Counted from the first letter of the stretch, positions 9,495-61,554 are shown. The stretch: 64,000 nucleotides of DNA from Mobula hypostoma (GCF_963921235.1 NC_086111.1:11780001-11844000); one strand, 5' to 3'. Translations and numbers: made by a program. The notes: generated by a model not told the origin, from the letters alone.

Positions 9495-9989
9495 CAATAT
9501 TCTTGTTAATTTCCTCCAGACTCTTTCAATTTTATTGATATCTTTCCTGCAGTTAGGTGACCAGAACTGCACACAATACTCCAAATTAGGCCTTACAAAT
9601 ATCTTACACGATTTCAGCATAACATCCCAAATCCTATACTAAATTTGATTTATGAAGGGCATTATGCCAAAAGCTCTTTTTAAGAATCTATCTACCTCTG
9701 ACATCACCTTTGAGGAATTATGGATCTGTATTCCCAGATCCCTCTGTTCTGCTGCATTCCTCAGTGCCCTACTGTTCACTGTGCAAGTCCTACTCTGGTT
9801 TGTCCTCCCGAAGTGCAACATCTCACACACGGCTGTATAAAATTCCATCTGCTACTTTTCAGCCCATTTCTCCAGCTTGCTCACTTTCCAGTTACCCCTA
9901 ATCTTGGTGTCATTCGCAAATTTGCTGATCCAGTTTACCACACTATCATCCAGATCGTTCATATACACTGAGTGACAAAATCTATATCG

Positions 9990-10630
9990 ACAGATCCCTC
10001 AAAGTTGCCGCATAAATTGATACAGTTGTTGAGAAGGTTATAGTGTGCTGACTTCCATTAGACAGGGAATTGAATTCAAGAGCTGTGAGGTAATGTTGCA
10101 GCTCCATAAAACCCTGGTCAGACCACTCTTGGAATATTGTGCTCAGTTTTAGTCTCCTCATTATGGGAAGGATGTAGCAGCTTTAGAGAGGTGGTGAGGA
10201 GATTTACCAGGATGCTGCTTGGATTAAAGTACATATTTTATGAGGATAGGTTGAGCAAGTCACGATTTTGCAGCAAAGTAGGATTAGAGGTGACTTCAAA
10301 GAGATGCACAAATCAAGTAGATAGCTAACAACTTTTTCCTAGGGTGGAAATGGGCATAATTTTAAGATGATTGGAGGAAAGTATGGGAGTGGTTGTCAGA
10401 GCCAAGTTTATTTTACACCGAGTGCTAGGTTCATGGAACATGCCAGAGTTGCTGGTAGAGGCAGCTACATTTGGGGCACTTAAACTCTTTGACAGGCACA
10501 TGGATGACAGAAAAATGTGGGGCCATGCAAGAGTGAAAAGCCATATTTATCATAAGCAGTGTAAAAGGTCAACAAAAATAGTGGCCAAAGGGGCCTGTAC
10601 TGTAATTCAATGTTCTATGCTCTATGTTCT
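9990..10630 (+). mobile_element. CR1 3' fragment
   Basis: VRRFTRMLLGL..YEDRL and ttctatg-type tail. Confidence 0.7.
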
Positions 10631-14710: not shown

Positions 14711-15812
14711 CAGTGGATTCCAGTTAATGAGGCATTGATTAATCGGAGCAGCCATTTATTTGGGTCACCTCTTAAAGAACAAAACTTAATTGAGAAAGAA
14801 GTCAGGGTTCCCTTTGTTTATTTGGGACACTGTGGAGCTTAATTGGGACAGCAGACAGTTACTGAACGAATTTGAAATAATGTCAGACACGTGCACTTCT
14901 GTGGCCATTGAACACTACACCAGCTTTAGAACAAACAGGTTTTGAATAGCATCACTTGCATGGTTTTGTGCTTAAAGAGCAAAAATTTTTGTGGCTGATA
15001 ATTGGCAAGAAATAAACAGGAAGACTATTCAGAATTGTTTTGCTCACTGTGGTTTGAAGAATTCCAGCTTGGAGATGCCAGAAACAGCTGGCACTGAACA
15101 TAAAATGATTTTTCTACTTCAATGGAACCATGGTACTGTAGCGATTAGCTCGACGCTATTACAGCTCAGGGCAGAGTTCAATTCCTGCGTTGTCTGTAAG
15201 GTGCCTTTGTATGTCCTTCCCGTGAAATATGTAAATTTTCACCAGGTGTTCTGGTTTCCACCCACAGTGCAAAAACGTACTGGTTAGGTTAAATGTTCAT
15301 TATAAATTGTCACATGATTAGGTTACATTTAAATCGGGGTTGTCAGGGGTTGCTGATTCAGCATGGCTCAAAGGACCAGAAATACCTATTCCGCTCTATA
15401 TCTCTAAATAAAATTAGAAATTATGAAGAATTTGAAGGTATTGACAATCACCTTGAAGATTACAATGAAAATGAAGATTTGGAGGTTGCAATAGTCAAAA
15501 CCATTGTACCAAGGCAGTCCATTAGCTGTACTAAGTCTCTGCATTGATTTGTTCATTTACAATCTATCAAAAGAACACAGCAGCATCCAATGGATGAACT
15601 CTCCATTGATAACCATTAGGAATTAATAGTTTTTATAGTACTGTAGCAGTACAGTGCTCTAATTTGTTCCATATTTCAGTTAAATACATAATTTGTTACT
15701 CAGTTAAACAGAAGTTTGTCTTCACTATGCCTTTCTAATTATTTCTATTTAATTTCAGACGCTTATTTGTGCGAAAATGTCCAAGTGTGTCCCAATTAAC
15801 TGGCATCCACTG
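14711..15812 (+). mobile_element. Tigger/pogo-type DNA transposon remnant with nested tRNA-SINE (~15125-15410)
   Basis: TIRs cagtggat(t/g)ccagttaat. Internal WQEINRKTIQNCFAHCG matches a Tigger DDE C-terminal motif. Confidence 0.75.
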
Positions 15813-16096: not shown

Positions 16097-16285
16097 CTTG
16101 AGCTTGACATGAAGGCCTCCTTTCGATCCCATCATAATAGCTGAACCATTTGTAGTTATCATGGCCATAGACTGGAGGCAGATTTGGTGCTCAACATAGA
16201 ACTTCTTTATAGATTTGTACAAGGATACAGCATCAGATTTACCATCCAGATAAAGCAGCTTTATAAATTTCACTTGCAGCTCAGT
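16097..16285 (-). CDS. hAT-derived gene exon E (second catalytic motif region)
   Basis: tttttcatgtAG|ACT, phase 0. TELQVKFIKLLYLDGKSDAVSLYKSIKKFYVEHQICLQSMAMITTNGSAIMMGSKGGLHVKLK resembles the hAT TDGAxxMxG motif. Donor AAG|GTAAAT, 189 nt. Confidence 0.85.
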
Positions 16286-18836
16286 CTACATGAAAAACAA
16301 AACTAACATTTACCTATAATTGAATGTGCACTTTTATTTTACAAAAGACACTGCAAAAACTGCACTTCGAGCTAAAATTTACAGAGATGGTAAATTGCAT
16401 TTATGGAATCAGCTGACAAAGAAATCAGACGGGGCAAAGTGGATCTTAGCTTATCTCACTCACATGTCCCATCTCCAATAGTGCAGCACTCCCTCGCCAC
16501 TGCAATGGAGTGTTCCAAATATCTGTGTTCAAGTTTCTAAAACAGAACTTGTATTGATAACCTTCCAACAAGACACGACAATTATAAATATGATGGTTAG
16601 AATTATTCAACCATTGTTGGGCAGGGAAAGGTTTAGAATCCCAACTTGAGAAAATGCAAAAAATGCTTCCAGGCAGGAAATGTGGATATATTGAAGATAT
16701 AACTAGATTACAGGTCCAGAAGAGACGATGGGTCAAGTTCACATATTTACAGAATCAAATGACAAAATGAATTCCAAAGCAGAAACTTAAGCTTCGCTCA
16801 AAAACTTATTGTATATTTTTTTCTGAATGTGTGACAGTAATATACTGTAGAAAATAGCAGCTTGGTTAAACAATTTAGTACACAAATTCTAGGTGGCTTC
16901 AGTAAATATAAATATAGATAGAAATAATGTTAAACCAAAGAGATCAAGTGAGAAATAGATTAAGGAACATGTACACATTATTAGAAACATCAAATAATTG
17001 TAAACACTCCTACACACGCAAAACATTCAAAATACTTTTCACTTAGCTGAAACTTAGACATGCATTAGAATTAGAAACTAAAGAGCATTCTACAGCCAAA
17101 GTTGAAGGAAAATTACAATTATTTTGTTTTTGGAAATATGCATGCTCAAATTTAGAGAAAGAAATCAACCATCCAGCTTTATGGGAAGGCTTGATTAAGA
17201 AAGACAGCAAGTATCTCCAAAAATATCTATATAAATTAGTATTTCCATACCAAGATAACAAAAGTAACACAAGGACCATATTGAAGATCTTCACTGAGAG
17301 ATAAACTGTTGGCTGCTATGCTTTTCATAACTAAAATCATAGTTCAATGATCTTTGAAAGCACAATTATACTCAAGTGTGACTGGCTGCATAACATGCTT
17401 TTTCGATAACAAAGAGCAATCGGAGGGAATAAAGGCTGCAGCAGGGATTTAGCTATAACTTGGCAAAACTTTACTTATAAAGGAGTGCAAGGTCATATCT
17501 TATTGTGAGAAATCTTTCAGAAGCAATAATCAGAGAAGAAAGCCACTGCAGAGTTGTTGAAGGCAAATTATACTGAACAAACTGTAAGAATTTTGGTTAA
17601 GGGGATAGAAAAGGTTGAAGAGATTACTATATTGATTAATCACATGCATTTTAAAAATGGGTTGGATGAAATCCCCACAGAAGGCTGGTAAGGAAAGCTG
17701 AGGCCCTTGAAATACAATTAGAAGCACAGTACTATGTACAGAAGAACAATGAATAATTTTTTCAGAATAGAGGTGGTAGCAAATATGATCCAAGTTGTCC
17801 ATGTTTGAGCATTGATTTTTTCATGTATTCATGACTTGGACATGGGTGTATAGAGTAGAACTTCAATTTGCAGATGGCACCAAAGTTATAGCAAAGGGTA
17901 GGATATTATGTTTAGACATAAATAAGCCTGCAAAATAAGATAACTGACAGATGATATTTACTACATCTGATTCTCCGAGGCCTCTGTTGGTCAGAGACGA
18001 CCATGAATATTGCATCCTAGCTACCTAGATACACAAGTCTGGACTGTATGATATGGAGAGCAAGCTGTTGGCCATGCAGCAAGCTCTCCCTCTCCATACA
18101 TCTGATGAACCCAAAGGTACAGCAGAAATAGATACAGTTTTAATACAAGAATGCATGAAATAATAAATTTCCAATTTTATCCAACATAGGTCTTCTTGTT
18201 GAGAAGTATGCAAATTAAGTTAAAAAAAAAGGCAACTACTTCATGTCACAGCACTAAAAAGTATGAGCAAACAGGGGGGGGGGACTTGCATATGTTTATA
18301 AATAATTGAAAGTGCCATTACACATTTGAAAACTCGAGCTTCATAAATGGAAGCATCAAGTACAATAATAATCCTGATGAAGGGCCTCATTCCCTTGCAC
18401 GCAAAATTTCAAGGTGACAAAGGATAAACGTAATCCAAAAATCCAAATCAGTCATACGAAAACTCACTAAAAGGCTCCAAATTACAGTTTTGGAAGAAAA
18501 AAAGCCATGCTCACCTCTATGCTGTATGTTGCTTCAATTGCCATTTGCCCAGTTATGACCAGTGACACTTAAAATAGCTTTAAATTTGATACAGTTTTAA
18601 AAAATAAAATTACATTTTTCTTCAAACACGATTGTAATTGAATGAGAGAAAAACAAACTATAATCTCGAAGAACAACCCTGTTCGGAAGGTTGGGGGGTG
18701 GGGGGCACATTACATATCACAACCACAGCTGGCATAAAGTAGCATCAATTCAGTACATCCAAATGCTTTCAGACCCAACACTGCATCCAATGGCAGACAA
18801 GGTCAGTGCAAGACCGCAGTAGTACTCGCTGTAAAG

Positions 18837-20008
18837 CAGCGGTCCCCAACCACCGGGCTGCAAGGAAACGATATGATTTGGCGATAGGAGTCAGCTGCAC
18901 CTTTCCTCATTCCGTCACGCCCACTATTGAGCCATTACGCACGCGAGGTCATTAACCACTTGTCATCCGTGTCAGCGCGGGAAGGAGATCAACTCCTCGA
19001 GCTTGCAAATGACGGCTGGCTGAAAAGTATGTTTGATATAACATCTCTGCCAGCATTCCGGATCAAAGTCAAGGCTAAATATCCTGAGATAGCCACGAAA
19101 GCACTGAAAACGTTGCTTCCATTTCCAACATATCTCTGCAATGAATGCAACGAAAACTAAATCGCGGAATAGACTGGACATAAGGAACCCCCTTCGAGTA
19201 TCGCTGTCTCCCACCTGCCCTCGATAAGACCGTCTTGTTGCAGGAAAACAAGCCCAGGGCTCCCACTGATTCAGTGATATTGGTGCGTTGCAATGATTTT
19301 ATATTTTCATATGAGGAAAATATGCGCTGTGTGTTTGATATCCAAACGTTACTTAAAATGTTATGATGCTATTATAAGTGACTTACATAACCATGTAACA
19401 ATTACGGCATGGAAACAGGCGATCTTGCCCCTTCTAGTCCGTGCCGAACGCTACTCTCACCTAGTCCCACCGACCTGCACTCAGCCCATAACCCTCCATT
19501 CCTTTCCTGTCCATATACCCATCCAACTTTTCTTTAAATGATAACGTCGAACCTGCCTCTACCACCTCTACCGAAAGTTCGCTCAACACTTCAAGCTCCC
19601 CTGTCCTCCCCAATATTTGTCTTATCGCTATATTCATGCGAGGAAAATATGCGCTGTATGTTTAATATTAAATTCGTTAGATAAACCCTTTTAGAAACGA
19701 ACTGAAGTGTATCAGCCACTTATCACCTATATTCCGGTCGTGATTAACACACACCCCCGCCGCCAACAGAATCGGCAAAAACAATTTTTAAGAAATCGGC
19801 ATGTAAACGCATGCGCAAGTTACGCATGCGCTGGTGCCCGCGCAAGGCTTCATGGTCATTGAAGTCTTTCTTAGGGTAAACCCAACGTATTTGACTGCTA
19901 CTCTTGTACGTTGGCAACCATACCGCACCCACCCCCGGGTCGGCCAGTCTGCAAGAATATTGTCAATATGAAACCGGTCCGCAGTACGAAAAAGGTTGGG
20001 GACCCCTG
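18837..20008 (+). mobile_element. Non-autonomous hAT (Charlie/Buster-type) element
   Basis: TIRs cagcggtccccaacc / ggttggggacccctg. Perfect 8-bp TSD ctgtaaag (18829-18836, 20009-20016). Dimerisation-domain remnant YPEIATKALKTLLPFPTYLC. Confidence 0.92.
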
Positions 20009-21010
20009 CTGTAAAGAGTTATGGGGCAGCATGACCCTTGCATTTCCCCCGTCATGGGTTTGGGAGAAGCTTCAAGCGAAGTACTTAACATTTTTGCAAA
20101 GCCTGTAAATAGTTACAAAAGGTAACTTCTCCCAAAAACACTGTAAATTCTGGATTGATAAAGGAACGTGGACACCAGAGAAAATCTTGCAAATCCAGAA
20201 AATAATCTAGAAGTGGCTTTTCCATAGGTCTAAAGCAAAAACACAAAGATTGGCCAACAGATATCATACAAGGAATACCATGTGGCTTGCTTAAACATGC
20301 TGTAATTTCTATATAGTCGCAGCACAAATCCATATACATCAATAGTGGCTTACGCTTGATAGAGAGCCATATTCATGCCTTGCTCTTTATAAAAATGGTG
20401 TTTTGTCTGCCTGAAAGTTACAGACAAGCTGAACAATTTGCAATGACAAAGCGTTTGGATTATATTTATTTACTGTACAACTCTCATAACAATGTATAAT
20501 GACAAACTTTTTGCAATCTTCACAACATTTGCACAATAGATGACAACCCTCTGGCAGAGTTCAAACTCTGCACCACAAATACTAATCAATTTTTACAATA
20601 CCAAATACATAATCCCACTGGAACCTCATCACAGATAATGCATCAAATAACCTCTTCCTCGATGTCAACAATACAAAAAAGATGTTATCAATTTCAAGAG
20701 AACTCTAATCATTCACACCCCTCTTTACATCAGTGGCACAGCAGTGGAAACAGGAGTTTCAAACTCCGAGGAGTGCACATCTCACAAAACCTTTCATGGT
20801 CCCAGAATACATTCTGCACAAATCAGGAAAGCTCACCAATGTCCCTACTTTCTGTAGAGGTTGAAGAGGGCTGGACTATGCACATCTATATTCACCTCAT
20901 TCTACAGATACACCTTCAGAGCATCCTAACAAGCTACACAGTACAGAACCTGCAGTCCAGCAGACAGGAAGGCTCAATAACAGAGTCAAAACTGGCCAAC
21001 CTTATCATCA

Positions 21011-23450
21011 AAGTTGCTGGTGAACGCAGCAGGCCAGGCAGCATCTCTAGGAAGAGATACAGTCAACGTTTCAGGCCGAGACCCTTCGTCAGGCTTAACT
21101 GAAGAAAGAGCTAGTAAGAAATTTGAAAGTGGGAGGGGGAGGGGGAGATCCGAAATGATAGGAGAAGACAGGAGGGGGAGGGATGGAGCCAAGAGCTGGA
21201 CAGGTGATTGACAAAAGGGATACGAGAGGATCATGGGACAGGAGGCCCAGGGAGAAGGAAAAGGGGGAGGTGGGGGGGGGGAAGCCCAGAGGATGGGCAA
21301 GGGGTATAGTCAGAAGGGCAGAGGGAGAAAAAGGAGAGGGAGAGAAAGAATGTGTGTATATAAATAACGGATGGGGTACGAGGGGGAGGTGGGGCATTAG
21401 CGGAAGTTAGAGAAGTCGACGTTCATGCCATCAGGTTGGCGGCGACCCAGACGGAATACAAGGTGTTGTTCCTCCAACCTGAGTGTGGCTTCATCTTTAC
21501 AGTAGAGGAGGCCGTGGATAGACATGTCAGAATGCGAATGGGATGTGGAATTAAAATGTGTGGCCACTGGGAGATCCTGCTTTCTCTAGCGGACAGAGTG
21601 TAGGTGTTCAGCAAAACTATCTCCCAGTCTGCGCCGGGTCTCGCCAATATATAGAAGGCCACATCGGGAGTACCGGACGCAGTATATCACCCCAGCCGAC
21701 TCACAGGTGAAGTGTCGCCTCACCTGGAAGGACTGTCTGGGGCCCTGAATGGTGGTAAGGGAGCGATCCTTGCGGAAAGCGGGGGGGGGAGGGGGGAGGG
21801 AAAGATGTGCTTAGTGGTGGGATCCCATTGGAGGTGGCGGAAGTTATGGAGAATAATATGTTGGACTCGGAGGCTGGTGGGGTGGTAGGTGAGGACCAGG
21901 GGAACCCTATTCCTAGTGGAGTGGCGGGAGGATGGAGTGAGAGCAGATGTGCGTGAAATGGGGGAGATGCGTTTGAGAGCAGAGTTGATGGTGGAGGAAG
22001 GGAAGCCCCATTCTTTAAAAAAGGAGGACATCTCCCTCGTCCAGGAATGAAAAGCCTCATCCTGAGAGCAGATGCGGTGGAGACGGAGGAATTGCGGGAA
22101 GGGGATGACATTTTTGCAAGAGACAGGGTGGGAAGAGGAATAGTCCAGGTAGCTGTGAGAGTCAGTAGGCTTATAGTAGATATCAGTAGATAAGCTGTCT
22201 CCAGAGATAATGACAGAAAGATCTAGAAAGGGGAGGGAGGTGTCGGAAATGGACCAGGTAAACTTGAGGGCAGGGTGAAAGTTGGAGGCAAAGTTAATGA
22301 AGTCAACGAGCTCAGCATGCGTGCAGGAAGCAGCGCCAATGCAGTCGTTGATGTAGCGAAGGAAAGGTGGGGGACAGATACCAGAATAGGTTCGGGACAT
22401 AGATTGTTCCACAAAGTGGGAGGAGCCAAAGGAGAAATTAAGAGTAAGGACTAATTCCGCTAGACAGTGCAGAATTCCGCCCCAACGGGATCCCACCACT
22501 AAGCACATCTTTCCCTCCCCGCTCCACTGCTTTCCACAAGGATCGCTCCCTACACAACTCCCTTGTCCATTCGTCCCCCCCATCCCTCCCCACTGATCTC
22601 CCTCCTGGCACTTATCCTTGTAAGCGGAACAAGTGCTACACATGTCCTTACACTTCCTCCCTTACCACCATTCAGGGCCCCAGACAGTCCTTCCAGGTGA
22701 GGCGACACTTCACCTGTGAGTCGGCTGGGGTGATATACTGCATCCGGTGCTCCCGATGTGGCCTTCTATATATTGGCGAGACCCGATGCAGACTGGGAGA
22801 TCATTGTGCTGAACACCTACGCTCTGTCCGCCAGAGAAAGCAGGATCTCCCAGCGGCCACACATTTTAATTCCACATCTCATTCCCATTCTGACATGTCT
22901 ATCCGCGGCCTCCTCTACTGTAAAGATGAAGCCATACTTAGTTTGGAGGAACAACACCTCATATTCCATCTGGGTAGCCTCCAACCTAATGGCATGAACA
23001 ATGACTTCTCTAACTTCTGCTAATGCCCCACCTCCCCCTTGTACCCCATCCGTTATTTATATACACACGTTCTTTCCCTCTCTCTCCTTTTTCTCCCTCT
23101 GTCCCTCACTATACCCCTTGCCCATCCTCTGGGCTTTCCCCACCCCCCCCCTTTTCCTTCTCCCTGGGCCTCTTGTCCCATGATCCTCTCATATCCCTTT
23201 TGCCAATCACCTGTCCAGCTCTTGGCTCCATCCCTCCCCCTCCTGTCTTCTCCTATCATTTTGGATCTCCCTCTCCCCCTCCCACTATTAAATCTCTTAC
23301 TAGCTCTTTCTTCAGTTAGTCCTGACAAAGGGTCTCGGCTGAAACATTGACTGTACCTCTTCCTAGAGATGCTGCCTGGCCTGCTGCGTTCACCAGCAAC
23401 TTTGATGTGTGTTGCTTGAATTTCCAGCATCTGCAGAATTCCTCGTGTTT
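21011..23450. mobile_element. Penelope-like element with inverted two-arm structure, inserted in a Rex1-type LINE fragment
   Basis: Minus arm 21011-~22475 has RT motif RYINDC and LPFLDL plus GIY-YIG. Plus arm ~22476-23450 has the GIY-YIG ORF 22697-23023 (VIYCIRCSRCGLLYIGET). 16-bp TSD gccaac(c/a)ttatcatca at 20995-21010 and 23451-23466. Confidence 0.92.
21061..21096 (-). ncRNA. Minimal hammerhead ribozyme motif (GUU site)
   Basis: CTGACGA AGG GTCTCGG CCT GAAA CGTT GACT. Stem I is imperfect. Confidence 0.65.
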
Positions 23451-23819
23451 GCCAACATTATCATCACAGGCCTGACCGCCATCAAGGACAAATATACTGA
23501 AAAGTACCCAGAAAAGGGATAGTAACATCACAAACAATTGAACCCACCATGCTCATGGACTGTTTGCCCCATTCCCATCAGAAAGGAGGCTATGTAGCAT
23601 CCTTGCCAGGACCACAAGACACAACAACAGTTACTTTCCCCAGGTAATAATGCTGATTAACACCTCCACGCACTAACAGACCCCTCTACAACTACTTAAT
23701 CATTTCCTGTCAGTCACCTCATGTACAGACACTCCTGTGCCTGGCGTAACTTTATGGACACACAAATGTATCTTATTTATTGTGTTTTTTATTGTTGTGT
23801 GCTTTCTCTTATTGTAAAG

Positions 23820-23932
23820 ATAATAGATTCTGCAGATGCTGGAGATCCAGAGTAACAAACAAATAGTTGGAGGAACTCAGCAGGTCAGGCAACATCAGTC
23901 GACGTTTTGAGCTGAGACCCTTCATCAGGACT
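23820..23932 (-). mobile_element. Degenerate Penelope-like 3' end, hammerhead core mutated
   Basis: AGTC CTGATGA AGG GTCTCAG CTC AAAA CGTC GACT (GAAA changed to AAAA). Confidence 0.65.
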
Positions 23933-26900
23933 TTAAAACACTGCACCAGATCCAGAGTAACAATTACTTTGTTTGCGCTTACACTTGAGTACTGGAACTG
24001 AAACTAAAAATTAAATGAAGTGTCATGTGCTAGCTGGTGCAAACAGCATTAGGTCTTGGCACAACAGGAAGTCCCTGTACCCAGATACCACCCCAGATAA
24101 GGGCAAATCTCATGAAAATTTGAGAATATGCAAGATGAAGATACTAATATCTGAAGTGGACGTCAAAATTATCAAAAACAGTCAGACAATCATGACAAGG
24201 ACCTGGTGAATGTGCGACCTGCAGAAAACTGCCACAATCACTTTCTGGATCAGTGTGGAAATGATCTATCAATAAGGATCCCTGCTCAGTCTCCAGTGAT
24301 GAAATTATAGTTTCTGTTGAACTTTCCTTTAAGCAATGCCAATCTGTTCATACAAGATCCCTACATATGAACTGGTTAGCTTATGCTGCATAAGTGAGAC
24401 AAACAAATGGCTTCAAAGTATAGTTGTTTTGTTGGCTATGTATCGGATACATAAAAAAAACAGGAACCTCAGCTTCCAAAAAAAAGTACATTTTTTTCCT
24501 TTTGAGTGTTAGTCTTTTTTTTTCTTTAAATTGGGCTATTTCAGGTTTCTTGCTTTGTGGCTACCTATGAGCAAGCAAATCTCAAAGTTGTATAATTTAT
24601 ACATTCTTTGATAATAAATTTACCTGAATTTTGATCATAAGCCACTGAATGTAATTCCAAACCACCCTAAATGATTAGTCAGTACATCAAAGTTTACAGG
24701 GAGAAGGCAGTAGAGTAGGGTCAAAAGGGATTAATAGATCAGCCATTATGGAATGGTGGGTGGAGAAGACTCAAAAGGCCGAATAGCCAAATTCTGCTCC
24801 CACGTCTAATGGTCTAAAACAAAAATAGGCTGGTGTAACAATCTGAACTTGTGAACAGGTGAAAATGTGATAAAATGATAGGGAGCACAGATTCTACAAA
24901 GATTCCATAATTGGATGATGCTTTTGTCTTTTTTGCTGCAATCCCAGCAACATATCAACCATCCCAAATCATACAGACACATAAGAAAAAAACTACTGCA
25001 CAATACAGGCTCTTCAGCCCACAATGCTGTGCCAAACATGTACTTATTTTAGAAATTACCTAGGGTTACCCATAGCCCTCTATTTTTCTAAACATATCTA
25101 AACAATTTCATGAACTTGGATTAGGAATCTCTACAGCAACATACATATTTCCAAATAGGTCCCTAAAAAGAATGGCCTAAGGCAAAAAATTCATTCTGCT
25201 GAGTAAGTATGACGACCCAAAATACTACAGGCCAATCTCTCAGTTGCTTATGAAGGAAAGCATAGAGAATCTCTCCTCTTTTTCAATCCACAGTGGAAGC
25301 AATGCACTAAGGGTAAGCTGATATTCAGATACAAATCCTCCCTGAGCTGCAGAATTCTGCTTCTCAGAAGTTTTCATAACCTAAAAAAAAAATTAGCTTT
25401 GTCACGTGCATCAAAACACGCAGTGACATATGTCATTCACATCAAATAAAAACCATGATTGCATTGAGCAGCCTGCAAGTGTCAATCATCCAGCATAGCA
25501 TAGCATGCCCACACGTCACTAACCTGACCCATACATCTTTGGGACATGAGGGGAAACCGGAGCACCTGGGGAGAAACTCGTGGTCAAGGGGAGAACGTAC
25601 AAACTCCTTACAGAGAGGAGCAAAAAAATTAAACCCTGATTATACAACTGGCAGTGTAAAACGTGAGCAGTTTACAAGCCAAAAATGTAACCAATGGCAA
25701 TTTGTCTAAATAAAAATACAGGCTAAGAAAGAACAAGTGCAGTTTAACCAGAGTGTAACGCAATCAGATTTCTCTGCAAGATGCAATATTGCCATAAACC
25801 AGGTTCACACATGGTAGAAGATGCATGAAGCCCCACAGCAGCCATCCTCCCTGGCTTCCAAATGCTCATTCATACGTACAAGTTTTCTATAAACCAAGCA
25901 TTTATAACTAGAGGATGTGTAATCACAAGCTGCTGTGATTAGATATTCAACTAGCCATATCAAGTCCACATTTCAGCATTTAGCTGATTTGGCATTTATT
26001 GATGATACCAAGCTACCCATTAAACCTATTGAACTAAAAGGGTTCTGTTGAAGAGACTTTGTCACAAAACATTAATTCCATTCTTCTTGCCACAGAAGTA
26101 CCGCAACTTTTTTTAAAAAAAGAGATACAGCAGAGAAGGCCCGTCCAGGTCTTTGAGCCATACCGCGCCACAAACCCCATTAACCCTAACAATCACGGGA
26201 AAATTTAAAATGACTAATTAACCTTCCACAGTCTTCAGACCACAGGAGTAAACTGGAGCACCCAGCGAAAACCCACACATTCCTCAGGGAGGTTGTACAG
26301 AGACTCCTTACAGAATGGCACCAAAATTGAACTCCGAACTCCAGAATACCCATAGCTATAATATGATGTGTTAAATGCTATGTCACCATTGCGCCCCAGT
26401 GTTTTATTTCAGATTTCAGTTTTTGATTTTTAGCTGCCAGTTTCTCTTACAAGAATACCTCCACTTCCAGTTCTCTTCTGTCAATGTGTTTTGAAAATCT
26501 ATTAAATGCCTTCGAGACCAAGTAACAATGCTACGTTCTGCCCTTTCTGTCATGACAATGACCTCAAGAAACAAACTCATTTAGATTATTTCAATTCCAA
26601 ACTGAGTCCTCCCATAAAATATCCAGCAATCTTTAACTGGTTTGCCTTGATTAACCATACAAGGTGTTCTGCTCAGTTTATTAGATTACAGTCATATTCA
26701 AAGATTATGTGTCCCTCAAGGTCAATGCAGTTGCAGGAATCAAAGAGAACATTAGAGATTCAAGAAAGTACCTGGAGTACCAGAAACTGGCAAACATGAA
26801 TTAATCTGATGTCAAAAGATTTGCTCTAATTTGTATTACCAGCTTTGTATTACCAAACATTATTACCTGTACTTCACTCTATATTGAAGACAAGACTTGA

Positions 26901-27835
26901 AAACCTGGCTCTCTTGGTTATAATAAAACAGATTCAAAGGAACCTAATATATGCTTTAAGAATAAACAGACTTAAACATTCATGACTAGACTGACTGAAG
27001 GTGGTGATAGAAATTCAAGTATACACTGCGAGTAACTTCACATGTTGTCAGACAGAAGATAAACACCCTTGGATCAAATAACCTGAGCAATCTGTCTTTA
27101 CCTTAAAATATTTAAGTATTTCACATAACATTATGACTGAAAGTTAGAAGACTAGCTTAGAACTGCAGCAGCACACAGATTGATCATGAAACTATTACAG
27201 TTAATGCCTTCTGATAGTCAAATCAGCCAAACTAATACAACGGATACATGAGGAAATGCACACTATCACTTGTTTGGACATAACAACCACCTATCCTAGG
27301 AAAGAATTTATATTCATTGCATAAATGCTTAAAGACAAAATAAGCATTATAAAATATTAAAGATCTAGCAATTATCTTCACTGCAGACTATGTTGTAATT
27401 AACATAGTAAATATTTACCCAGACTAGTTTAAAAAAAACAGATGCTTCAAATTGAGGCCATGTGGAGAAGTTTCCAACACTGTGATGGCTGTGTCTCAGA
27501 AATATCATCCCTAAATAACATATAATGTTAGGCTGCTCCAGCGATGCTGAAGCTTCCAACTTCATGAGGAAAGAAAAGTTCAATCAGGAAGAGCAATGGT
27601 CTGCCAGGAGAGTAGCAGAAGCAAAAAATTACAATTGTTGGAGACACATCTCGATGTGGAAGGAGTGAGGGTAATACATCAGGTGTAATCACGGGACTAG
27701 AACCAGCTTTAAGGGACTAAATGGAAAAATGTTCTGCCGTCATTTGCTATGTGTAATGCAAGTTTAAAATTAAGATATAAAATGTCTAAACAGAATCAAT
27801 AACTCAAGCTCAGCTAAATACTGATTTATACAGTA

Positions 27836-29265
27836 CAGGTTTCCCCCGCCATCCGAAGGTAGAGCATTCCTATGAAACGGTTCGTAAGCCGAAATGTCGT
27901 AAAGCGAAGAAGCAACTACCATTCATTTATCATGGAAAAATTTGAGCGTTCGCAGACCCAAAAATAACAAACCAAATCATACCAAATAACACATAAAACC
28001 TAAAATAACACTAACATATAGTAAAAGCAGGAATGATATGATAAATACAAAGCCTATATAAAGCAGAAATACTTCTCTACAATCATTGCCACACTGTTCT
28101 CGGTAGCGAAAATCTCACGCAAGCGCTGTCGGCAGAAACACTCTCCAGTAACCTTTAAGCTATGAAGCTGCCAAATCATACCAAATAACGCATAAAAATA
28201 CACAGCCTATATAAAGTAGAAATAATGTATGTACAGTGTAGTATCACTTACCGGAATTGGGAAGACAGCGCAGAGCACACTGATGATGGTGTGTTAGGCT
28301 GAGTCGTCAGAGGTTGGGGTGGTGCAGTGGCCCCCACCCTCCGGGCCGCCGACCAACACCGATCCGCGAAGCATGCAGGGGTGCAGCGGTGGCCGGGTTG
28401 CAGAGAATGCAGCGGTAGCCGGGACACACCCAGCACATCTTTAAGAAAAAAAGCCGAAATAAACAAGCTAATTAATTAGGTGCCGCCCGGCACGTAAATG
28501 TCGATCCAGATCAGAGGCGACGCGGCCCGGGGGTTGGGGTGGTGGGACACTGGGGTGTCATCTCGTCGTCTGTTTCCATCAGGGCAGGCAGGTCATCTTC
28601 TTCTATGTCTGCCTGCCTCAGTGTCGAAGGTCGAGGTTTGTCGTCTGCTGTGGCTGATGTGGAAGGCTTGCTTGACTGCTTAGCCTCGTGCATTTTTCTA
28701 TCATACAGTTCTTTGTAAGCACTCAAACCATCTTGCAAATTTGCCCTAAACCAACTTACCCTTTCAAAATTAAAGTCGTACTTTATCACTGCAGCCAAAA
28801 TCTCATTCAATTGCTTCACGTTCAGTTCCTGGACAACTTCATTTTCAGCCCACTCGCTACTGCATTCGGTTTCGATTGTTATCCTTTCCTCTTCCAATTG
28901 CATCAGCTCTTCATCTATCAGTTCTTGGTCATGGGATGCCAAAACCTCTTCAACATCATCTTCGTCAACTTCCACAAGCCAAACTCACTTTGTCCTTACT
29001 TCGTTCACCACGATCGAAACGCTTAATTATGTCCAGTTTTACGCTAAGTGTAACACCCTTACGAGCTCTTTTAGGCTTTTCCGATACCTTAGAACTCATC
29101 TTGCAAACTGGTGCTCACGTGTTTAAGCAATACCAGCGACAATGTAGTTCTGAATCTGGGGGAGAGCGGCTGCTTGGGGCGCGCGCCGCTTTTTCTTCGC
29201 GCACTGCCTTTTATCGTAACAGTGAGGTTTCATAAAGCAAACGTTCGAAAAACGGGGGACACCTG
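27836..29265 (-). mobile_element. Tigger/pogo-type non-autonomous DNA transposon
   Basis: TIRs caggt(t/g)tcccccg, flanked by TA on the left and CA on the right. ORF EVDEDDVEEVLASHDQELIDEELMQLE is typical of Tigger C-termini. Confidence 0.85.
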
Positions 29266-30017
29266 CACTTGGCAATTAAGTCTATAGCTGTAACTAAAAC
29301 ATATACACATTCATATCCACAAAATCCAAAAGGAGAGCAGGAAACATAGGAAAGATGACCTAAAATGTGGCACAATTTTGTTTTTATAAAATAGATACAC
29401 AATTCTGACAGTCATTGCAATTATTGGAATTCTGTGAACTATCCTAACTATCCAAATTCGAAGAGGTAGGAAAGGACACTAGAAGATACAACTGAGCGCA
29501 AGAAGCTGGCAAACACGGGAAAATGTGAAATTTTCCAGTTTGACAGAAAAATAAAAATCTCAATGCTAAGAGATTGAGCTGCCCCAACTCTAGAGAGATC
29601 TGGATTCTCCAAGGCATGATTTGAAAATGACTGAGATAGGAACAGCTACAGACAGGAAAACCAACAGAAGGTTATTGCTTATTCTGAGAGGAGCCAAATA
29701 AAAACTGGGGAGGTCACATTTCAGTTATCTGGAGTACTATGTCATCCTACATATCCAACAACTATTAATCTTTTGTAGAAAAAAATTTTGGAATATTGGT
29801 GTCAGTCCACCACTTTAGATCAATACAGCAATCCAGGCAATGTTTGAAATGTTATTAAAATCCAACAGAAAATAACAATGTACTCATGGTGAATTTCTCA
29901 CTTTGAAAATACTGTTTGCAGCTGGAAGGAGCAGTCAAATTTTTGAGCTTCTAGCTGAATGGCTACTAAAACTGCATCAATAATAATTCCCTACAGCATA
30001 GGCAAATTAAGACTTAC

Positions 30018-30225
30018 CTTTGCAAGAAATTTTGTGTACATCATCAGGTGCTTTTCAGTGGCAATATCTGAACTTTCATCAACAATCAGAGAATGAACCC
30101 TTGCTTGCTTTAATGCCATTAGGTTTTCTGCCTCAACAGGTTCATTGAGAGCTGCAACAAACTGCCAGCTGTAATTTTTACTTCTGTGGCGTCTACCCAA
30201 TGATAGACCATGGCTCTCTATTAAC
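30018..30225 (-). CDS. hAT-derived gene exon D (first catalytic Asp motif)
   Basis: tttcattttAG|G, phase 2. LIESHGLSLGRRHRSKNYSWQFVAALNEPVEAENLMALKQARVHSLIVDESSDIATEKHLMMYTKFLAK contains the hAT SLxxDE(S/T)xD motif. Donor AAG|GTAAGT, phase 0. Confidence 0.87.
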
Positions 30226-30301
30226 CTAAAATGAAAAATTTACATGAGACAAAGACAGTAACAATAAAGAGGAAAAAAAGATTTATGAAAACAGTCTTTA
30301 C

Positions 30302-30577
30302 CTGTGTAGGCTTTTAGCTTTGGAAATGGGCAACTGTTCCTTGATTAACCACAGAACATTTCTGAGGAGGTGAACAACATCCTCTTTTGTGTCACTACTG
30401 AGAGCATCAGTAAATAGTGCCTTCTCCCAGTTGGCTGCACTTATAGGCACCGACAGTGCCTGAAGATGTTCTCTACTGGCCAGATGGCGAAGCAAGTAAT
30501 CTTTTTTCCACCCACCTTGTGGCTGAGACCTACCACTTGTCCACTCTGTATCAGTAATGCTATTATCAACACAAACT
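30302..30577 (-). CDS. hAT-derived gene exon C (rest of TTF-type zinc finger)
   Basis: ttctgttttAG|A, phase 2. VCVDNSITDTEWTSGRSQPQGGWKKDYLLRHLASREHLQAL...LPISKAKSLH(R). Completes CxxC...HxxSxxH. Donor AG|GTAAAG, phase 2. Confidence 0.85.
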
Positions 30578-30690
30578 CTAAAACAGAACATATCAAAAAA
30601 AAGTATTTTGTGCATAATCTCAACAATGAATGTTCAAGTACTGTTGATAAATATTTATGCTTACTTGCTATTTAAATACTTCATGCTTAC

Positions 30691-30923
30691 TTGCAATAGC
30701 ACTTGTTCTGCTGCTCATCATATAGAAAACAAGAGAGCCGTGGGTCCATTTGAATCCACGATTTGAGCCCACAGTTACTTCCTTTACACTTTTTCATTAT
30801 TCCATAATCGAAGTAGGAACTTTCCTTCAGTTCATCATCAAAACAACTGGCATAATTATCACTTTTATCTTTGTCTTCATCTTCATCAATTTCATGACCA
30901 TTAGCACAATCCCCTTCAGAATT
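30691..30923 (-). CDS. hAT-derived gene exon B (acidic linker + start of TTF-type zinc finger)
   Basis: tttcctttgcAG|AAT ... NSEGDCANGHEIDEDEDKDK...WIQMDPRLSCFLYDEQQNKCYC(K). Donor AA|GTAAGC, phase 2. Confidence 0.8.
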
Positions 30924-31013
30924 CTGCAAAGGAAAGATGGGGAAATTGCATTTCAAAAGATCACTTTTAAAACTGATTTAAAAGCTTTTGTTAAAAAAAA
31001 TCAAAATTATTAC

Positions 31014-31067
31014 CTCATGTGATCTTGTAGTGTTACGGTGAAACAATTCTAAAATAGAGCGATGCAT
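31014..31067 (-). CDS. hAT-transposase-derived gene, putative first coding exon (whole exon 31083-31014)
   Basis: Acceptor catttttccAG at 31085-31084. ATG at 31067 gives MHRSILELFHRNTTRSHE. Donor GAG|GTAATA, phase 0, in frame with the next exon after a 90-nt intron. Confidence 0.6.
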
Positions 31068-34000
31068 TGTATGTCCATCCAAACTGGAAAAATGTGAAAC
31101 ATGGAAGTTAAAAATAAAATACGAAATGCTTAAATAAAAGAATGATACTTTTTAAATGTGTTTTTATCCTTTCTCTTATGGTGAATTGCTTTTCAAATAA
31201 TCTGATTTATTTCACCTGCTGGCTTTTCCACTAATAACTCAACACAGATATGGACTCCTAAATAAAAAGTACTTGAAGCTTTCCATTCTTACAATTCAAA
31301 ACCAATCCTAAATGAGTTAAACTAGAAGCATAGTAACCATAGACACTCATTGTCGGAAAGCTACAAAATTGGAACCATCCATGTAATATCAACAAGACCT
31401 AAGTTTCGAAATGAATTCCTGGTATCTAATCATTACATATAGCAGAGTTGGAAACTATGAAAACTAAAACACACACAATTCTATCTATCTGAACAAAATT
31501 AAAACAAAAACAAAAAACCTGTTTGCTACCTTTATTCAATCAACTAAATTTTCCATTATTTAACCACATACTTCCAAACACTAAAATAAACTTTCACAAT
31601 CAATTTCATCACAATTCTTCACAACCCTTGCACAATATCTTATCACTTACCATTAATTATTAGCTGCCATTCTCTACACCACTGGAACGTCTCATTCTTT
31701 ACCCTAAATTTCAAGATCTGCCATGTTCACTGAAAACCTTAAAGCTTACAATGAGTGCATCAAGTTTTATGGTGCCTTCAAATCCTTTACAATCCTGCAA
31801 TACTATTTAAGTTTCATTGAAAGGAATAAAAACACATTTAAAAAACACTATATATTATTTTCCTCTTACCTGTCAAAACTTAACTTGCACCCTTTTAGCG
31901 TCACAACTGCACATCACAACCAGATGGTCCTTCCACAGCCTTGCTGAGTTCCTCCAAAGTCGCTTATCTTGTCAACGAATACATTTGTCGATTCTCATAT
32001 GCTTCAGCAGTTTTCCCCATTGTAGCTGCAAAGCTTCCTTAAGTCCCCAACACCACCAAAAAAGATCAAAACTAAACAACAGTTCGAGCCCTGATTACAG
32101 CTGACCGCAGCCTACATTGTAAGATAAAATTCACAACTCATTTTCAATACAGGCAACAAGGAACTGCAAGGACAAGTGACCACAAAACAATGCTTCACAA
32201 AATGTACGCATTAATCTGTTTGCAGCAACATTGTCCTTATCTACACTGCATTTTATGCCAGAAAGCCAAGATTTAAAGCTCTGACATGCATATTTCCCTC
32301 TTCTATTCTAGCATCCCAAATGCATTTTCCCCATGCATTCAGGGAGTCAAGAAAATCTACAAACTTTACTGTGCTCACGGACTTCTTCATCAAGTTATGG
32401 TATTGTTACACTGTTTGTAACTATATGTTATAATTATGTGGTATTGTCAGTTTTTTCAGTCTTGGTTTGTCCTGTGTTTTGTGATATCACACCGGAGGAA
32501 ATAATGTATCATTTCTTAATGCATGCATTACTAAATGACCATAAAAGAGGACTACGCGTCTTCATAATCATAAATCATAAACAGAAAAATGGGCCATTTA
32601 GTCATAATTTTGGGTTTTCACTGATATTTCTCCTGTTGTTAATTATCACTACTGGTGGTCACAAAAACCATTTGAGCTACAACTTAGAATATTAGGTAGG
32701 CCTAATTTCAAGAATACATTTCTGGATCCGAACTCACTGAATAATTGCTGAAAGAAACTTAAGTTTCAAACTATGTTGTCTGTTCCCACATTATAAGAAT
32801 GTACTTGCAATTAAAACAGAAAAAGCTGGAAAAGCACAGCAAGTCATGAAATTCCTGCTGTGTTTCCAGAAGTTTAATGCTTCAGGCTGAAGACACTGAA
32901 ATTCAGAAGGATAATTGACCTGAAACAACTGTTTCTCTTTCCACAGATGCTACAGATTGTTTCTAGCAAATATCCAGCAACTGAAGTGTTTTTTTTAAAC
33001 TTTTTGGTACATTTCCCTACTTGTCTCCCACCCAAAATCTTGATTTGAAAACATATTGCATATCAAATCTACAGTGGTCAAGTTGCATATAATTTTCCAT
33101 ACATGCAATGCAAGATATATTTATTGGAGTTAAAACCTTCAAATACAGCTTGCAGATTACAGGAGATAATATTAAAAATTGCAACCTACAATTACAAATA
33201 TCCCACAAACTCCCAAGACTGATTGGAACGATTGTCCTGTGCCTCTTATCAAGCGAGGAATGAAATCATAGCTGTCCTCATATAATGTGGACCAGAACTG
33301 ACTTACTGGTTTAATTTTCAGAAGCAAACAGCATCAAAACTAAAAAAATTAGCAAGATCATCTCAAATATTCCCAGATACTAGCTAACACCTGTACTGCA
33401 CGGTCTATTATGATACATTTATTCCAAATTTAACCTAAAAACTTTGATGTCAACCTGAACAAGAAATGAATATAATTGTAGAGTGAGAATTAAACTTTTT
33501 CAAAATCAGTGTAATGACCACACCTGCAGAATGTGTCTACCCATTTAAATCAACCCACCAGGCCAACACAAGAATGTGACCATTGAGACTGCACAATAAC
33601 ACAAGTGCAGCTTTAAATGAAAAAGCACCAAAGTCTTCTGACAGCCAACTGCCAGATGTACAGAGCAAAGGTGAGTAAATGGAATTCAAGTACAGATCAG
33701 ATATGATCAAAAAGAATCGCCATAGGCTTAATGGTCTGAATGACACACACTTTTTACATGGTACATAGAAAAACAAGACAGTTACTTTTCAGGAGCAGAG
33801 AAGTCTAGAGCCTAAAGGAGACAATTACTGTGAAATGGGCTGCAAACTACAAACTGAGGTTTGCCACTAATGAGAATAGTGAAGCCTCAATTTTTTTAAA
33901 CTCTTCACTAGCATCATTCAATTATTTTAGCAGAAAATTTAATTTTATTAGAAGTTCATCTAAACTATTTTGAGAACAATGATTGTAAATTAAAACCATA

Positions 34001-37000: not shown

Positions 37001-39109
37001 CATGGCAGACAAATTGATCCCAATTGTTATTAACTATTAATTCCAAAAACTTTCACCAGGATTTTAATTCCAGTATCTACTTGTGATTATTTTTTAAACC
37101 AAACTGATCTAAAAGTAATACATCTTTACCATTCATGATAACACACAATCACAAAATCTTTGTATCAAGCTCCAATGAGTAACATAGTTAAAAAAGGCGC
37201 AAGCCAGCAATGCAAATTAAATAAAATTATAACTCTGAAATAAGTTAATAGAACAAAATTTTAAAACATCAGCAAAAACTGATTTTCTTTGATAGACAGC
37301 AACTAAGAAAATTAACTTGCAAGATGCAGAGAAATACAAAATAAATACATGCTAAACATGCTTCTTCCAGCTTCAATTATTTGTATGTGTTGACAGAACA
37401 CAAAAGCTCTATACTAAAATAAGGGGCAAGACTAATTCAAGCACAGTGTTAACCAAGTGCTTTCAAAAATTCCAACACAGCAACTGAACTTTCAGAAATT
37501 TGTAGAGTGTACACTCTCTTAAGAATTCATGCAGTATCATAATGTAAATTTGGACATCAATACCCCAGTACAATTTCAACCTGAACAAATCCCTAATTAT
37601 TAATCAATTAGATCTTTGACAAATTCGGGAATGCCTTCAATTTAATTCTCCGGATAAACTGTACCCAACTGTAGTATCAATAGCCACTACTGCAAGATTG
37701 TGTGAACCAGGGTCATTGAAGTAAAAAAAAATCTATGATCTGCACATCATCTGCTTCTACTTTTAACAATATACTATTGGGATATCACACTGGTGACAGT
37801 AAATAAAACGTGTTTCTTTCACACAAAGTGCAAGTATCATAATTCACAAACACTATGCATAAGTGAGCTCTTGGTAAAATATTTCACAAATGTATATGTC
37901 ATTAACAGTAACTTCATTCCTGATTGGACTGAAATCTTATTACAAAATAAATTTGATACACCTGTTCTCTCAATTGCAGATGTGAGTATATATTTAAATT
38001 GTGAACACCACAAGCTGTGATAAAAGGTTTTCAGCTATGCAAAACAAATATGTTTGCTGTAATCCAATAGTAAAGGTACCATTTGTACAAGTGGATATAT
38101 TAAAGTTGACTGTATTGATTCTTTGACGCACTGCAATTTAGATTTAAGCATATCATTAAGTGCATCTCCCATGTGCCATTGTTCATTCTCTCAATACAAC
38201 TCGCAATTGCTTTGCATACAAGATCATTTATGAAAGGCAAAACCAATGTCACAAAGTCGAACACATCACACGTAGAATCAGAATATAACAGTTATGAAAC
38301 AAAATGTTCAAAACACTAACAAAAAGAAACTTGTCTGACAATTTCCCAGCTTTCTTTCATTTCTGCAAAAAGTACTCACTGTGATATCCTGCTCTTTCAC
38401 ACAAGAATAGATCAGTGTCATTGGCAAGTTACCCAGCAGAAATTATGTCCATAGTTTTCCCATATAGAACCACATTCAAAACCAGACAAAATACATAGCC
38501 CACATTGACCAAACTCAAGAGTATGCAAAACATGTCAAAGACACTTAACTTTGCCAGACTTTCATATCTCCCATATTTTGACCATCACCTAAACTCAAAA
38601 ACAATGGGACCACAACAGCCCCCAAAAACCAAGGGAGCACAAATCAAAATCCAATGCACTCCCACCCCATAGCAGCAAGTCCTCCAACTGAACAGCTGGC
38701 TTCAGGAGCCTAAGCAACAAAACACCAGGTCAATGGAACAACAATATGCCCCAGAAACACCTCAACACGGCATGTTTCCACTCAAGTTCTAAACCTATCA
38801 AGACTTCTCATGGTCTACAGGAGCACCCAATACCTTAATCCCAAATACATTAATCCTAAGAAACCTACAGACAACTACAACAACAAGCTCAGAAAATACT
38901 CACACCACCAAAGACCCAAGCATCCCAAACCAATGCTCTAGAAAATGCTAGATCAACTACCCCAGGGCAACTGAAATATTCCCAGGTAATCCACTCCCAC
39001 AGCATGCCAACCCCATTAACTGATCCCTTTTATAACCCCCAGGTAACCCATTCTTACTGCAACCCAAACCCTACATATCTAGAGTACCTCCCCCATGATC
39101 CTCCCTCTG

Positions 39110-39560
39110 TACATCACATACACTGAGTAACCGCTCCCATCGTAACCCCCACACACACTGGGTAACCGCTCCCATCATAACCACACACACACGGAAACCA
39201 CTCCTATCGTAACCCCCACCAAACACACACACAGGGAAATCATTCCCATCGTAACCCCCACACACACTGGGTAACCACTCCCATCATAACACACACAGGG
39301 AAATCATTCCCATCATAACCCCCACACGCACTGGGAAACCACTCCCATCGTAAGCCTCACACACACTACTGGGTTAACCACTCCATTGTAACCCTATATA
39401 CACACACACACACAGAAACCAAGCCCATCGTAACCCCCAAAAAAACACCGGGAAACCACTCCCATCATAACCCCACACACACACACAGAGGGACACCACT
39501 CACATTGTAACCGCCCCCCCACACACTGGGTTTATACATACACACACACAGTAGCCACTC
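39110..39560. repeat. Minisatellite, ~33-38 bp unit, about a dozen degenerate copies
   Basis: Unit approximately cacacactggg(t/a)aaccactcccatc(g/a)taacccc with variable CA runs. Confidence 0.9.
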
Positions 39561-40244: not shown

Positions 40245-41780
40245 ATAGAAACATAGAAAATAGATGCAGTAGTAGGCCATTCGGCCCTTCGAGCCTGCAA
40301 CGCCATTCAGTATGATCATGGCCGATCATCCAACTCAGAACCCTGTACCAGCCTTCCCCCCATACCCCCTGACCCCCGTAGCCACAAGGGCTATATCTAA
40401 CTCCCTCTTAAATATAGCCAATGAACTGGCCTCAACAGTTTCCTGTGGCAGAGAATTCCACAGATTCACTACTCTCTGTGTGAAGAAGTTTTTCCTCATC
40501 TCGGTCCTAAAAGGCTACCCCTTTATCCTCAAAATATGATCCCTCTGGACTTCTGGACTTCCCCAACATCGGGAACAATCTTCCTGCATCTAGCCTGTCC
40601 AATCCCTTTAGGATTTTATACGTTTCAATCAGATCCCCCCTCAATCTTCTAAATTCCAATGAGTATAGGCCTAGTCGATCCAGTCTTTCATCATATGAAA
40701 GTCCTGCCATCCCAGGAATCAACCTGGTGAACCTTCTTTGTACTCCCTCTATGGCAAGAATATCTTTCCTCAGATTAGGGGACCAAAACTGCACACAATA
40801 CTCCAGGTGTGGTCTCACCAAGGCCTTATACAACTGCAGTATTACCTCCCTGCTCCTGTACTCAAAACCTCTTGCTACGAATGCCAGCATACCATTCGCC
40901 TTTTTCACCGCCTGCTGTACCTGCATGCCCACTTTCAAGGACTGGTTTACAATGACACCCAGGTCTCGTTGCACCTCCCCTTTTCCTAATCGGCCACCAT
41001 TCAGATAATAAAGCAACACACATCAAAGTTGCTGGTGAATGCAGCAGGCCAAGCAGCATCTCTAGGAAGAGGTACAGTCAACATTTCAGGCTCGCAGGGT
41101 CCTGACGAAGGTTCTCGCCCCGAAACGTTGACTGTACCTCTTCCTAGAGATGCTGCCTGGCCTGCTGCGTTCACCAGCAACTTTGATGTGTGTTGCCTGA
41201 ATTTCCAGCATCTGCAGAATTCCTCGTGTTTGCATTCAGATAATAATCTGTTTTCCTGTTCTTGCCACCAAAGTGGGTAACCTCACATTTATCCACATTA
41301 AATCCACCACTCATGTGCCATGAATTTGCCCACTCACCTAACCTATCCAAGTCACCCGACATCCTCTTAGCATCCTCCTCACAGCTACCACTGCTGCCCA
41401 GCTTCGTGTCATCCACAAACTTGGAGATGCTGCATTTAATTCCCTCGTCTAAGTCATTAATATATTGTAAACAACTGGGGTCCCAGCACTGAGCCTTGTG
41501 GTACCCCACTAGTCACAGCCTACCATTCTGAAAAGGTCCCGTTTATTCCCACTCTTTGCTTCCTGTCTGCCAACCAATTCTCTATCCACATCAATACCTT
41601 ACCCCCAATACCGTGTGCTTTAAGTTTGCACACTAATCTCCTGTGTGGGACCTTGTCAAAAGCCTTCTGAAAATCCAAATATACCACATCCACTGGTTCT
41701 CCCCTATCCACTCTACTAGTTACATCCTCAAAAAATTCTATGAGATTCGTCAAACATAATTTTCCTTTCACAAATCCATG
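40245..41780 (-). mobile_element. Young 5'-truncated CR1 LINE
   Basis: RT motifs DFQKAFDKVPH, YINDL, KFVDDTK, LYKALVRPHLEYCVQFWSP. Tail atagaaacatagaaa. Interrupted at 41012-41232. Confidence 0.93.
41012..41232. mobile_element. Short fold-back Penelope-like derivative with 14-bp TSD
   Basis: Inverted arms around a plus-strand hammerhead motif (41098-41133). TSD cattcagataataa at 40998-41011 and 41233-41246. Confidence 0.9.
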
Positions 41781-61365: not shown

Positions 61366-61554
61366 ACTAATTAGTCCCTGAAGGATTCGTTTGTTAGAGG
61401 AACAGAAAGGAATTGCTGTGGCCTAGACGGGATTCGGGGTGCCAGGACATCTCGAATCCTTCAGGGACAAATTTTTAAGTAGGAAGGTGAGCAGCCAGAG
61501 GTCATGGTCCATATAGGTACTAATGACGTAGGTGACGAGGTTCTGCAAAGAGAG

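Follow-up and report, generated by a model that had tools for sequence, protein, structure and literature searches.

A hAT transposase-derived gene, probably maintained and catalytically dead, downstream of NCKIPSD exon 1 in the ray Mobula hypostoma

The stretch analyzed here, referred to as the window, comprises 64,000 nucleotides of the Mobula hypostoma genome (GCF_963921235.1 NC_086111.1:11780001-11844000), and all positions are counted from its first letter. Its minus strand carries the first exon of NCKIPSD and, downstream of it, a putative gene of six collinear, canonically spliced exons, which together are predicted to encode 365 amino acids homologous to 'ZNF862-like' hAT transposases (Table 1). 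Five of these exons had been proposed in an initial annotation of the window, and the sixth is newly found. The gene is probably a selectively maintained descendant of a hAT transposase that has lost its catalytic function. The features on which this reading is based are described first, followed by the alternatives.

The five exons of the initial annotation possess GT donors and pyrimidine-rich YAG acceptors throughout, at the coordinates given for them. The donors of exons 1 to 5 read GTAATA, GTAAGC, GTAAAG, GTAAGT, and GTAAAT, in this order. The joined exons yield 960 nt, that is, 320 codons with 0 stops; they end in phases 0, 2, 2, 0, and 0, and introns 1 to 4 have lengths of 90, 113, 76, and 13,732 nt. 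The open frame, the phases, and the intron lengths had all been claimed before and are borne out, as is the assembly of the finger's CxxC by splicing, with C95-K-V-C98 straddling the exon 2/exon 3 junction. The sixth exon was found by scanning the minus-strand frames below position 16,097. It is preceded by ttttgtAG (AG at 424-423) and followed by GTAAAA (GT at 285-284), and its phases are 0 at the start, which fits the end of exon 5, and 2 at the end. Exon 6 contains the CxxH-motif region, which the initial annotation had been unable to find in the window; its statement that the catalytic Glu and the dimerisation domain are likewise unmatched there still holds. Positions 1-285 gave no match to family proteins. 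Exons 1-6 amount to 365 codons without a stop, spread over 31 kb, and all 11 splice dinucleotides are intact. The gene continues past the start of the window, so that about half of it, the 5' half, is visible.

Table 1. Coordinates of the transposase-derived gene, its two long introns, the elements nested in them, and the neighboring NCKIPSD exon
Feature	Position	Strand	Remarks
NCKIPSD exon 1 (SH3 domain)	39936-39766	-	PDB 9i2b_H, E=7.5e-20; CpG island
Exon 1, proposed	31067-31014	-	ATG at 31067, 18 codons, donor GAG GTAATA; hypothetical
Exon 2	30923-30691	-	acidic N-terminal region and first finger half through C95
Exon 3	30577-30302	-	second finger half (C98, GWKKDY, H127, H133), linker, start of DUF4371 region
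Exon 4	30225-30018	-	VDESSD motif; first catalytic Asp D237 kept
Intron 4	30017-16286	-	13,732 nt, full of nested repeats
Exon 5	16285-16097	-	ITTNGSAIMMG including N303 (AAT, 16150-16148)
Intron 5	16096-423	-	15,674 nt, full of nested repeats including decayed LINE remnants
Exon 6, newly found	422-286	-	begins VDIPWLLGQHFVVHSEALAIKD; F331 (TTT, 392-390), H334
Non-autonomous hAT element, intron 4	18837-20008 (18829-20016 with flanks)		1,172 bp, terminal inverted repeats and target-site duplication
Penelope-like element, intron 4	21006-23407		inverted arms of ~750 nt, 92.9% identical, 7 gaps
Decayed LINE reverse-transcriptase remnants (several), intron 5	8649-10188		contain all 8 counted stops

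The 5' end of the model is formed by a hypothetical exon, whose 18 residues show no homology to any relative and whose ATG lies in a fair context. Exon 2 is preceded by a strong acceptor (tttcctttgcag) in phase 0. It has no in-frame ATG before M61, its start corresponds approximately to the position at which the proteins of the relatives begin, and its residues 71-96 can be aligned to them. For the long introns, it was also considered that they might be mere repeat insertions in an otherwise continuous frame. This possibility was rejected, because the junctions remove exactly the non-homologous sequence; the borders display GTAAGT-type donors and pyrimidine tracts with AG.

No single exon matched Pfam. 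Because the introns split the domains, the family identity was shown through relatives. The spliced 365-amino acid product was compared locally with these relatives. In this local comparison, a check of the BLASTP/HMMER type that the initial annotation had suggested, the product proved collinear to hAT relatives at 154-179 bits. The alignment to P0009 forms one collinear block covering residues 71-365 (154 bits), and the alignments to P0019 score 173 bits in phmmer and 179 bits in BLASTP (residues 53-365 and 29-365, respectively); all of them run through every junction in the aligned part. At the junctions, the alignment to the intronless relatives shows no gaps of note. When the family proteins were compared with the window by tblastn, matches were obtained only at exons 3-6, on the minus strand and in order. 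An exhaustive HMMER search with exon 3 in 1.84 billion representatives returned only 14 weak matches (32-43% identity), and most of those scanned carry the Pfam domain zf-C17orf113, one of them also DUF4371. The domains found in the relatives are PF25431 (zf-C17orf113), PF14291 (DUF4371), PF27073 (RNase-like), and PF05699 (dimerisation). The finger of P0004 matches PF25431 with 39.3 bits (cut-off 29.5), and the ligands C95, C98, H127, and H133 of the ray protein align to the finger of the PF25431-matching relatives. Two relatives, from sponge and coral, bear the name 'zinc finger protein 862-like', and the family profile matches the Hermes hAT transposase in PDB (E=3e-8). The family named in the initial annotation, a hAT transposase of the ZNF862-like group with a TTF/C17orf113-type finger, was right.

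The ray gene is distant from all of these proteins, none of which exceeds 38% overall identity to it. A profile search including exon pieces revealed neither a closer relative nor any of the vertebrate proteins ZNF862, C17orf113, and ZMYM1. In the tree, the ray sequence stands alone on a terminal branch of 1.41 changes per site, compared with a median of 0.25. The turtle relative P0076 was examined as a possible vertebrate orthologue and rejected, being intronless, only 28% identical, and adjacent to CCDC73. No description of a transposase in NCKIPSD, or of elasmobranch genes of the C17orf113 type, was found in the literature.

The TTF finger and the DES.D motif, both recognized in the initial annotation, are present. 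The third motif it listed, TDGAxxMxG, actually reads TTNGSAIMMG, in which the Asp is replaced by Asn. D237 of the VDESSD motif, the first catalytic Asp, aligns to DES(N/T)D of all relatives, whereas the second is lost in the ray protein (N303), which has ITTNGS instead of the family's FTSDGA. This Asp is kept in 16 of the 17 relatives spanning the motif, among them P0033, which has it as SDAA; the exception is P0021, which carries Gly ('FTSGGA'). In the PDB alignment, 'VTDRGANVV' of Hermes pairs with 'TsdGa' of the family, and N303 would occupy the position of Hermes D248, the second Asp of the DDE triad, according to our reading of the numbering of the construct. A further deviation concerns the CxxH motif, which is HFVVH in the ray protein, with F331 in place of the Cys and H334 kept. 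The Cys of HCVAH is kept in all motif-spanning relatives, the most distant included, either as HC.AH or, in P0043, as HCQP. A hAT enzyme mutated in its DDE residues no longer cleaves DNA or transfers strands, and hairpins fail to form when CxxH is mutated in the hAT enzyme Kat1, which agrees with Hermes H268 (PMC4763223). Taken together, N303 and F331 make it most likely that the ray protein is catalytically dead and no longer a working transposase.

The presence of introns does not by itself point to domestication, because two intron positions are common to the ray gene and to L001, a decayed, transposon-like sequence. L001 (Logan contig, run SRR31358916, 37% GC) encodes P0005, which is among the two nearest relatives found (38% identity). 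It contains a 51-nt AT-rich insert with a stop (773-823) directly behind KLK and before the next residue, which is exactly where intron 5 lies in the ray gene, and a GT donor (948-950) exactly at the donor of exon 6 and in matching phase (...YSYFS(R) gt). In contrast to the ray gene, it keeps SDGA and HCIAH and is frameshifted, the homologous reading shifting from frame 2 to frame 1 within the equivalent of exon 6; it is regarded as a transposon copy, not an orthologue. L001 has no introns at positions 2, 3, and 4, and the other relatives, including the turtle copy, are single open reading frames (ORFs), so that introns 2-4 are absent from every relative found. From the shared positions we infer that at least two introns (5 and 6) derive from the parent transposon. 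Introns 2-4 may have been gained in the ray gene or lost elsewhere. The intron positions within this hAT lineage seem to be conserved across very distant hosts.

The repeats in the two long introns provide a measure of the decay to which the locus has been exposed. Because they are nested inside the introns of the gene, they are younger than the gene itself. That the introns received true insertions is indicated by the non-autonomous hAT element (a MITE) in intron 4, which has terminal inverted repeats (CAGCGGTCCCCAACC and GGTTGGGGACCCCTG, 15 bp, 14/15 matching) and an intact 8-bp target-site duplication (CTGTAAAG). The Penelope-like element in the same intron has an 893-nt center between its arms, a 307-amino acid ORF, and an ORF with a weak GIY-YIG match (18.9 bits). 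The initial annotation's account of nested elements is upheld for the hAT element, the Penelope-like element, and remnants of long interspersed nuclear elements (LINEs); a Tigger-like ORF was recognized by eye only. In the LINE reverse-transcriptase (RT) remnants of intron 5, whose reference copy carries RVT_1, 8 in-frame stops occur in 516 aligned codons, compared with 0 in the 365 codons of the gene (Fisher p=0.014; Poisson P(0)=0.0035). A divergence of d=0.036 (~3.6% per arm) was taken from the inverted arms of the Penelope-like element, assuming a single insertion. Under simulated neutral change of this extent, the probability that the coding sequence shows neither a stop nor a frameshift and that 22 splice nucleotides are also unchanged is ~1e-3, and it falls below 1e-4 at d>=0.05. 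Despite 14-16 kb of since-decayed repeats in each of the two introns, the frame is open and no splice site is damaged. The earlier view that the exons remained intact during the decay of the younger repeats nested between them survives this indirect, semi-quantitative test, but does not reach full support.

The distribution of substitutions points in the same direction. At columns conserved in at least 85% of the relatives, the ray gene is changed in 12 of 24 cases within the catalytic core (residues 296-335) and in 8 of 40 cases within residues 61-295 (p=0.024). The proportions are reversed in transposon-like outliers, for which the counts in the core and upstream of it are 3/25 and 17/40 (P0040), 7/23 and 22/39 (P0043), and 0/15 and 8/36 (P0005). 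In the transposon-like relatives, the catalytic core is the best-kept part. The pattern of the ray gene fits a lost constraint on catalysis together with a continued constraint on the finger/DUF4371 part. Uniform drift is disfavored, because the changes concentrate in the core. The core-specific relaxation and the loss of the active-site residues at N303 and F331 strengthen the case for a maintained gene.

The transposase exons are located 8.8 kb downstream of NCKIPSD exon 1 and on the same strand. The donor of this exon (GAG GTGAGC at 39766) is in phase 0 and compatible with the phase-0 acceptor of exon 2 at 30923. The only CpG island near the gene is situated at NCKIPSD exon 1. NCKIPSD exon 2 was not found in the window, although this negative result is weak, as it was obtained in a crude motif scan. 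Of the initial claim that the gene is nested in NCKIPSD intron 1, the position of an NCKIPSD exon upstream on the same strand is confirmed; the nesting itself is plausible and even likely, but not proven.

The explanation we favor, with moderate confidence, is that the locus is a hAT transposase-derived gene which selection has maintained and whose product is catalytically dead. Its product would consist of a C17orf113/TTF-type zinc finger, followed by DUF4371 and an RNase-H-like core. The finger and the N-terminal region would mediate sequence-specific DNA binding, the dead RNase-H-like fold would serve as a scaffold, and the protein might act as a regulator or adaptor. Transcription could start at exon 1, from an unrecognized promoter, or at the CpG-island promoter of NCKIPSD, via the strong acceptor of exon 2. 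At least introns 5 and 6 would have been inherited from the ancestral transposon and expanded by later repeat insertions. If so, the locus is probably one more case of a well-known kind, a tamed transposase that serves as a DNA-binding protein.

Several observations weigh against this explanation. The protein libraries contain no orthologue and no annotated copy, the identities not exceeding 43% for exon 3 and 38% overall, and no CpG island or recognizable promoter is present at exon 1. The exon-intron structure could be no more than an inheritance from the parent transposon. Statistical significance is modest (p=0.014 and p=0.024), and the clock presupposes that the LINE copies in the intron were undamaged at insertion and that the arms of the Penelope-like element stem from one insertion. 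Furthermore, the 3' half with the catalytic Glu and the dimerisation domain, which lies outside the window, might be broken.

Some of these points would equally suit a dead, drifting relic of an intron-bearing autonomous hAT element in NCKIPSD intron 1, which lost its activity through the D>N and C>F changes and whose frame has stayed open only through the slow change of cartilaginous-fish DNA and the chance landing of later insertions in introns. The intron 5 position and exon-6 donor shared with L001 imply that the parent transposon had introns, the relatives are multi-copy (member counts 20-37), the libraries hold no orthologue, annotation, or transcript-derived protein, a promoter-like CpG island is missing at exon 1, and the loss of the active site is equally expected of a dead copy. 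Such a relic is nevertheless unlikely, though far from negligible. It would have accumulated no stop in 365 codons, whereas the younger nested repeats have about one stop per 64 codons, and it would have retained all 11 splice dinucleotides and an open frame in spite of a very long terminal branch (1.41 changes per site). Nor would drift account readily for changes at conserved positions that are uneven, falling in the catalytic core and sparing the finger and DUF4371. A chance open frame, or a mis-joining of unrelated transposon fragments, may be set aside almost entirely. The lack of Pfam matches for single exons is in its favor, but exons 2-6 are collinear and non-overlapping on one strand with exact phase continuity, and the 150-180 bits against intronless relatives already contradict it.

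A different question is whether exons 2-6 belong to a gene of their own. They could be alternative downstream exons of NCKIPSD, giving rise either to an SH3-transposase fusion or to a transcript from a shared promoter, as in ZBED6. The common strand, the distance of 8.8 kb from NCKIPSD exon 1, the matching phases, and the position of the sole nearby CpG island at the NCKIPSD promoter would all agree with this, as would the strong acceptor of exon 2, which closely precedes the point at which the relatives' proteins start, and the lack of an in-frame ATG before M61. A phase match, however, arises by chance in one of three cases, exon 1 with its fair-context ATG and GT donor offers an alternative start, and to our knowledge SH3 is not among the host domains fused to transposases. 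We therefore consider this arrangement doubtful. The same low standing is given to a more specific scenario, a batoid-specific fusion, in the making or already made, in which the NCKIPSD promoter and SH3 exon are spliced in frame to a dead finger-bearing hAT protein and introns 2-4 were gained after the element had settled. Fusion genes are documented to arise in this way, a transposase being captured through a splice acceptor that closely precedes its frame (bioRxiv 10.1101/2020.05.07.082677). Should the fusion exist, its SH3-transposase architecture would be one that has not been described so far.

The window contains further elements. The non-autonomous hAT element of intron 4 contains, on the plus strand, what is left of a hAT C-terminal ORF (18927-19160), and a third copy of the Penelope-like element, 90-94% identical, is located at 61554-62836. 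In intron 5, two adjacent plus-strand ORFs of 98 and 84 amino acids (14991-15547) resemble the C-terminal part of pogo/Tigger by eye, with no Pfam match. Three neighboring ORFs (103, 112, and 170 amino acids) make up a fairly well-preserved LINE RT segment (40507-41831), which reaches the gathering score of RVT_1 and is located immediately upstream of the CpG-island promoter of NCKIPSD, in the same orientation. Just downstream of NCKIPSD exon 1, in intron 1, diverged tandem repeats (~73-75% identical, unit of ~170-250 nt) occupy positions 39103-39531. CpG-rich patches with a GC content of 0.55 and an observed/expected ratio of 0.74-0.86 were noted at 28251-28750 and 60751-61500, the former adjoining and partly inside a Tigger-like acidic ORF (28511-28975) in intron 4.

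Vertebrates have repeatedly obtained DNA-binding proteins from tamed transposases, and the catalogued cases are almost all from tetrapods or teleosts. If the favored explanation is true, the ray gene would add a case from a cartilaginous fish, in which the transposase part is split by many introns. With a catalytic pocket that is visibly relaxing and a finger that is kept, it would represent an intermediate stage of transposase capture, placed within intron 1 of a host gene whose upstream exon is compatible in phase. A simple test of whether intron positions were inherited from the transposon or gained later would also become possible. As a multi-copy relic, the locus would be ordinary.

The closest known systems are the ZNF862-like hAT transposases themselves, such as P0052 from the sponge Dysidea avara, P0078 from the coral Acropora palmata, and P0045. 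Their domain order is that of the 365 amino acids of the ray gene, to which they are collinear with 30-38% identity, and CxxC...HxxxxxH, GWKK(E/D)Y, DES(N/S)D, and K.L..Y are common to both. The transposases are multi-copy, mostly encoded by a single ORF, and keep FTSDGA and HCVAH, whereas the ray gene is interrupted by 5 or more introns, carries N303 and F331, and has a relaxed core and a long lone branch. Among human genes, ZNF862, C17orf113, and ZMYM1 are hAT-derived, combine an N-terminal TTF/C17orf113-type finger with DUF4371 and a hAT core, and are presumed to bind DNA and not to be mobile. Their transposase part is contained in one large exon, and they are not known to be located in NCKIPSD. 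No KRAB or MYM exons were seen in the ray gene, and orthology to these human genes is unlikely. In its probable genomic setting, the locus resembles ZBED6, a hAT-derived gene in intron 1 of ZC3H11A, and host-transposase fusion genes: a hAT-derived sequence would occupy intron 1 of a host gene, in the orientation of that gene and downstream of its CpG-island promoter, and, as in the fusion genes, a splice acceptor is present just upstream of the transposase frame. ZBED6 is intronless and has a BED finger; in contrast, the ray locus is multi-exonic and encodes a C17orf113/TTF-type finger, to which the host exon would add an SH3 domain.

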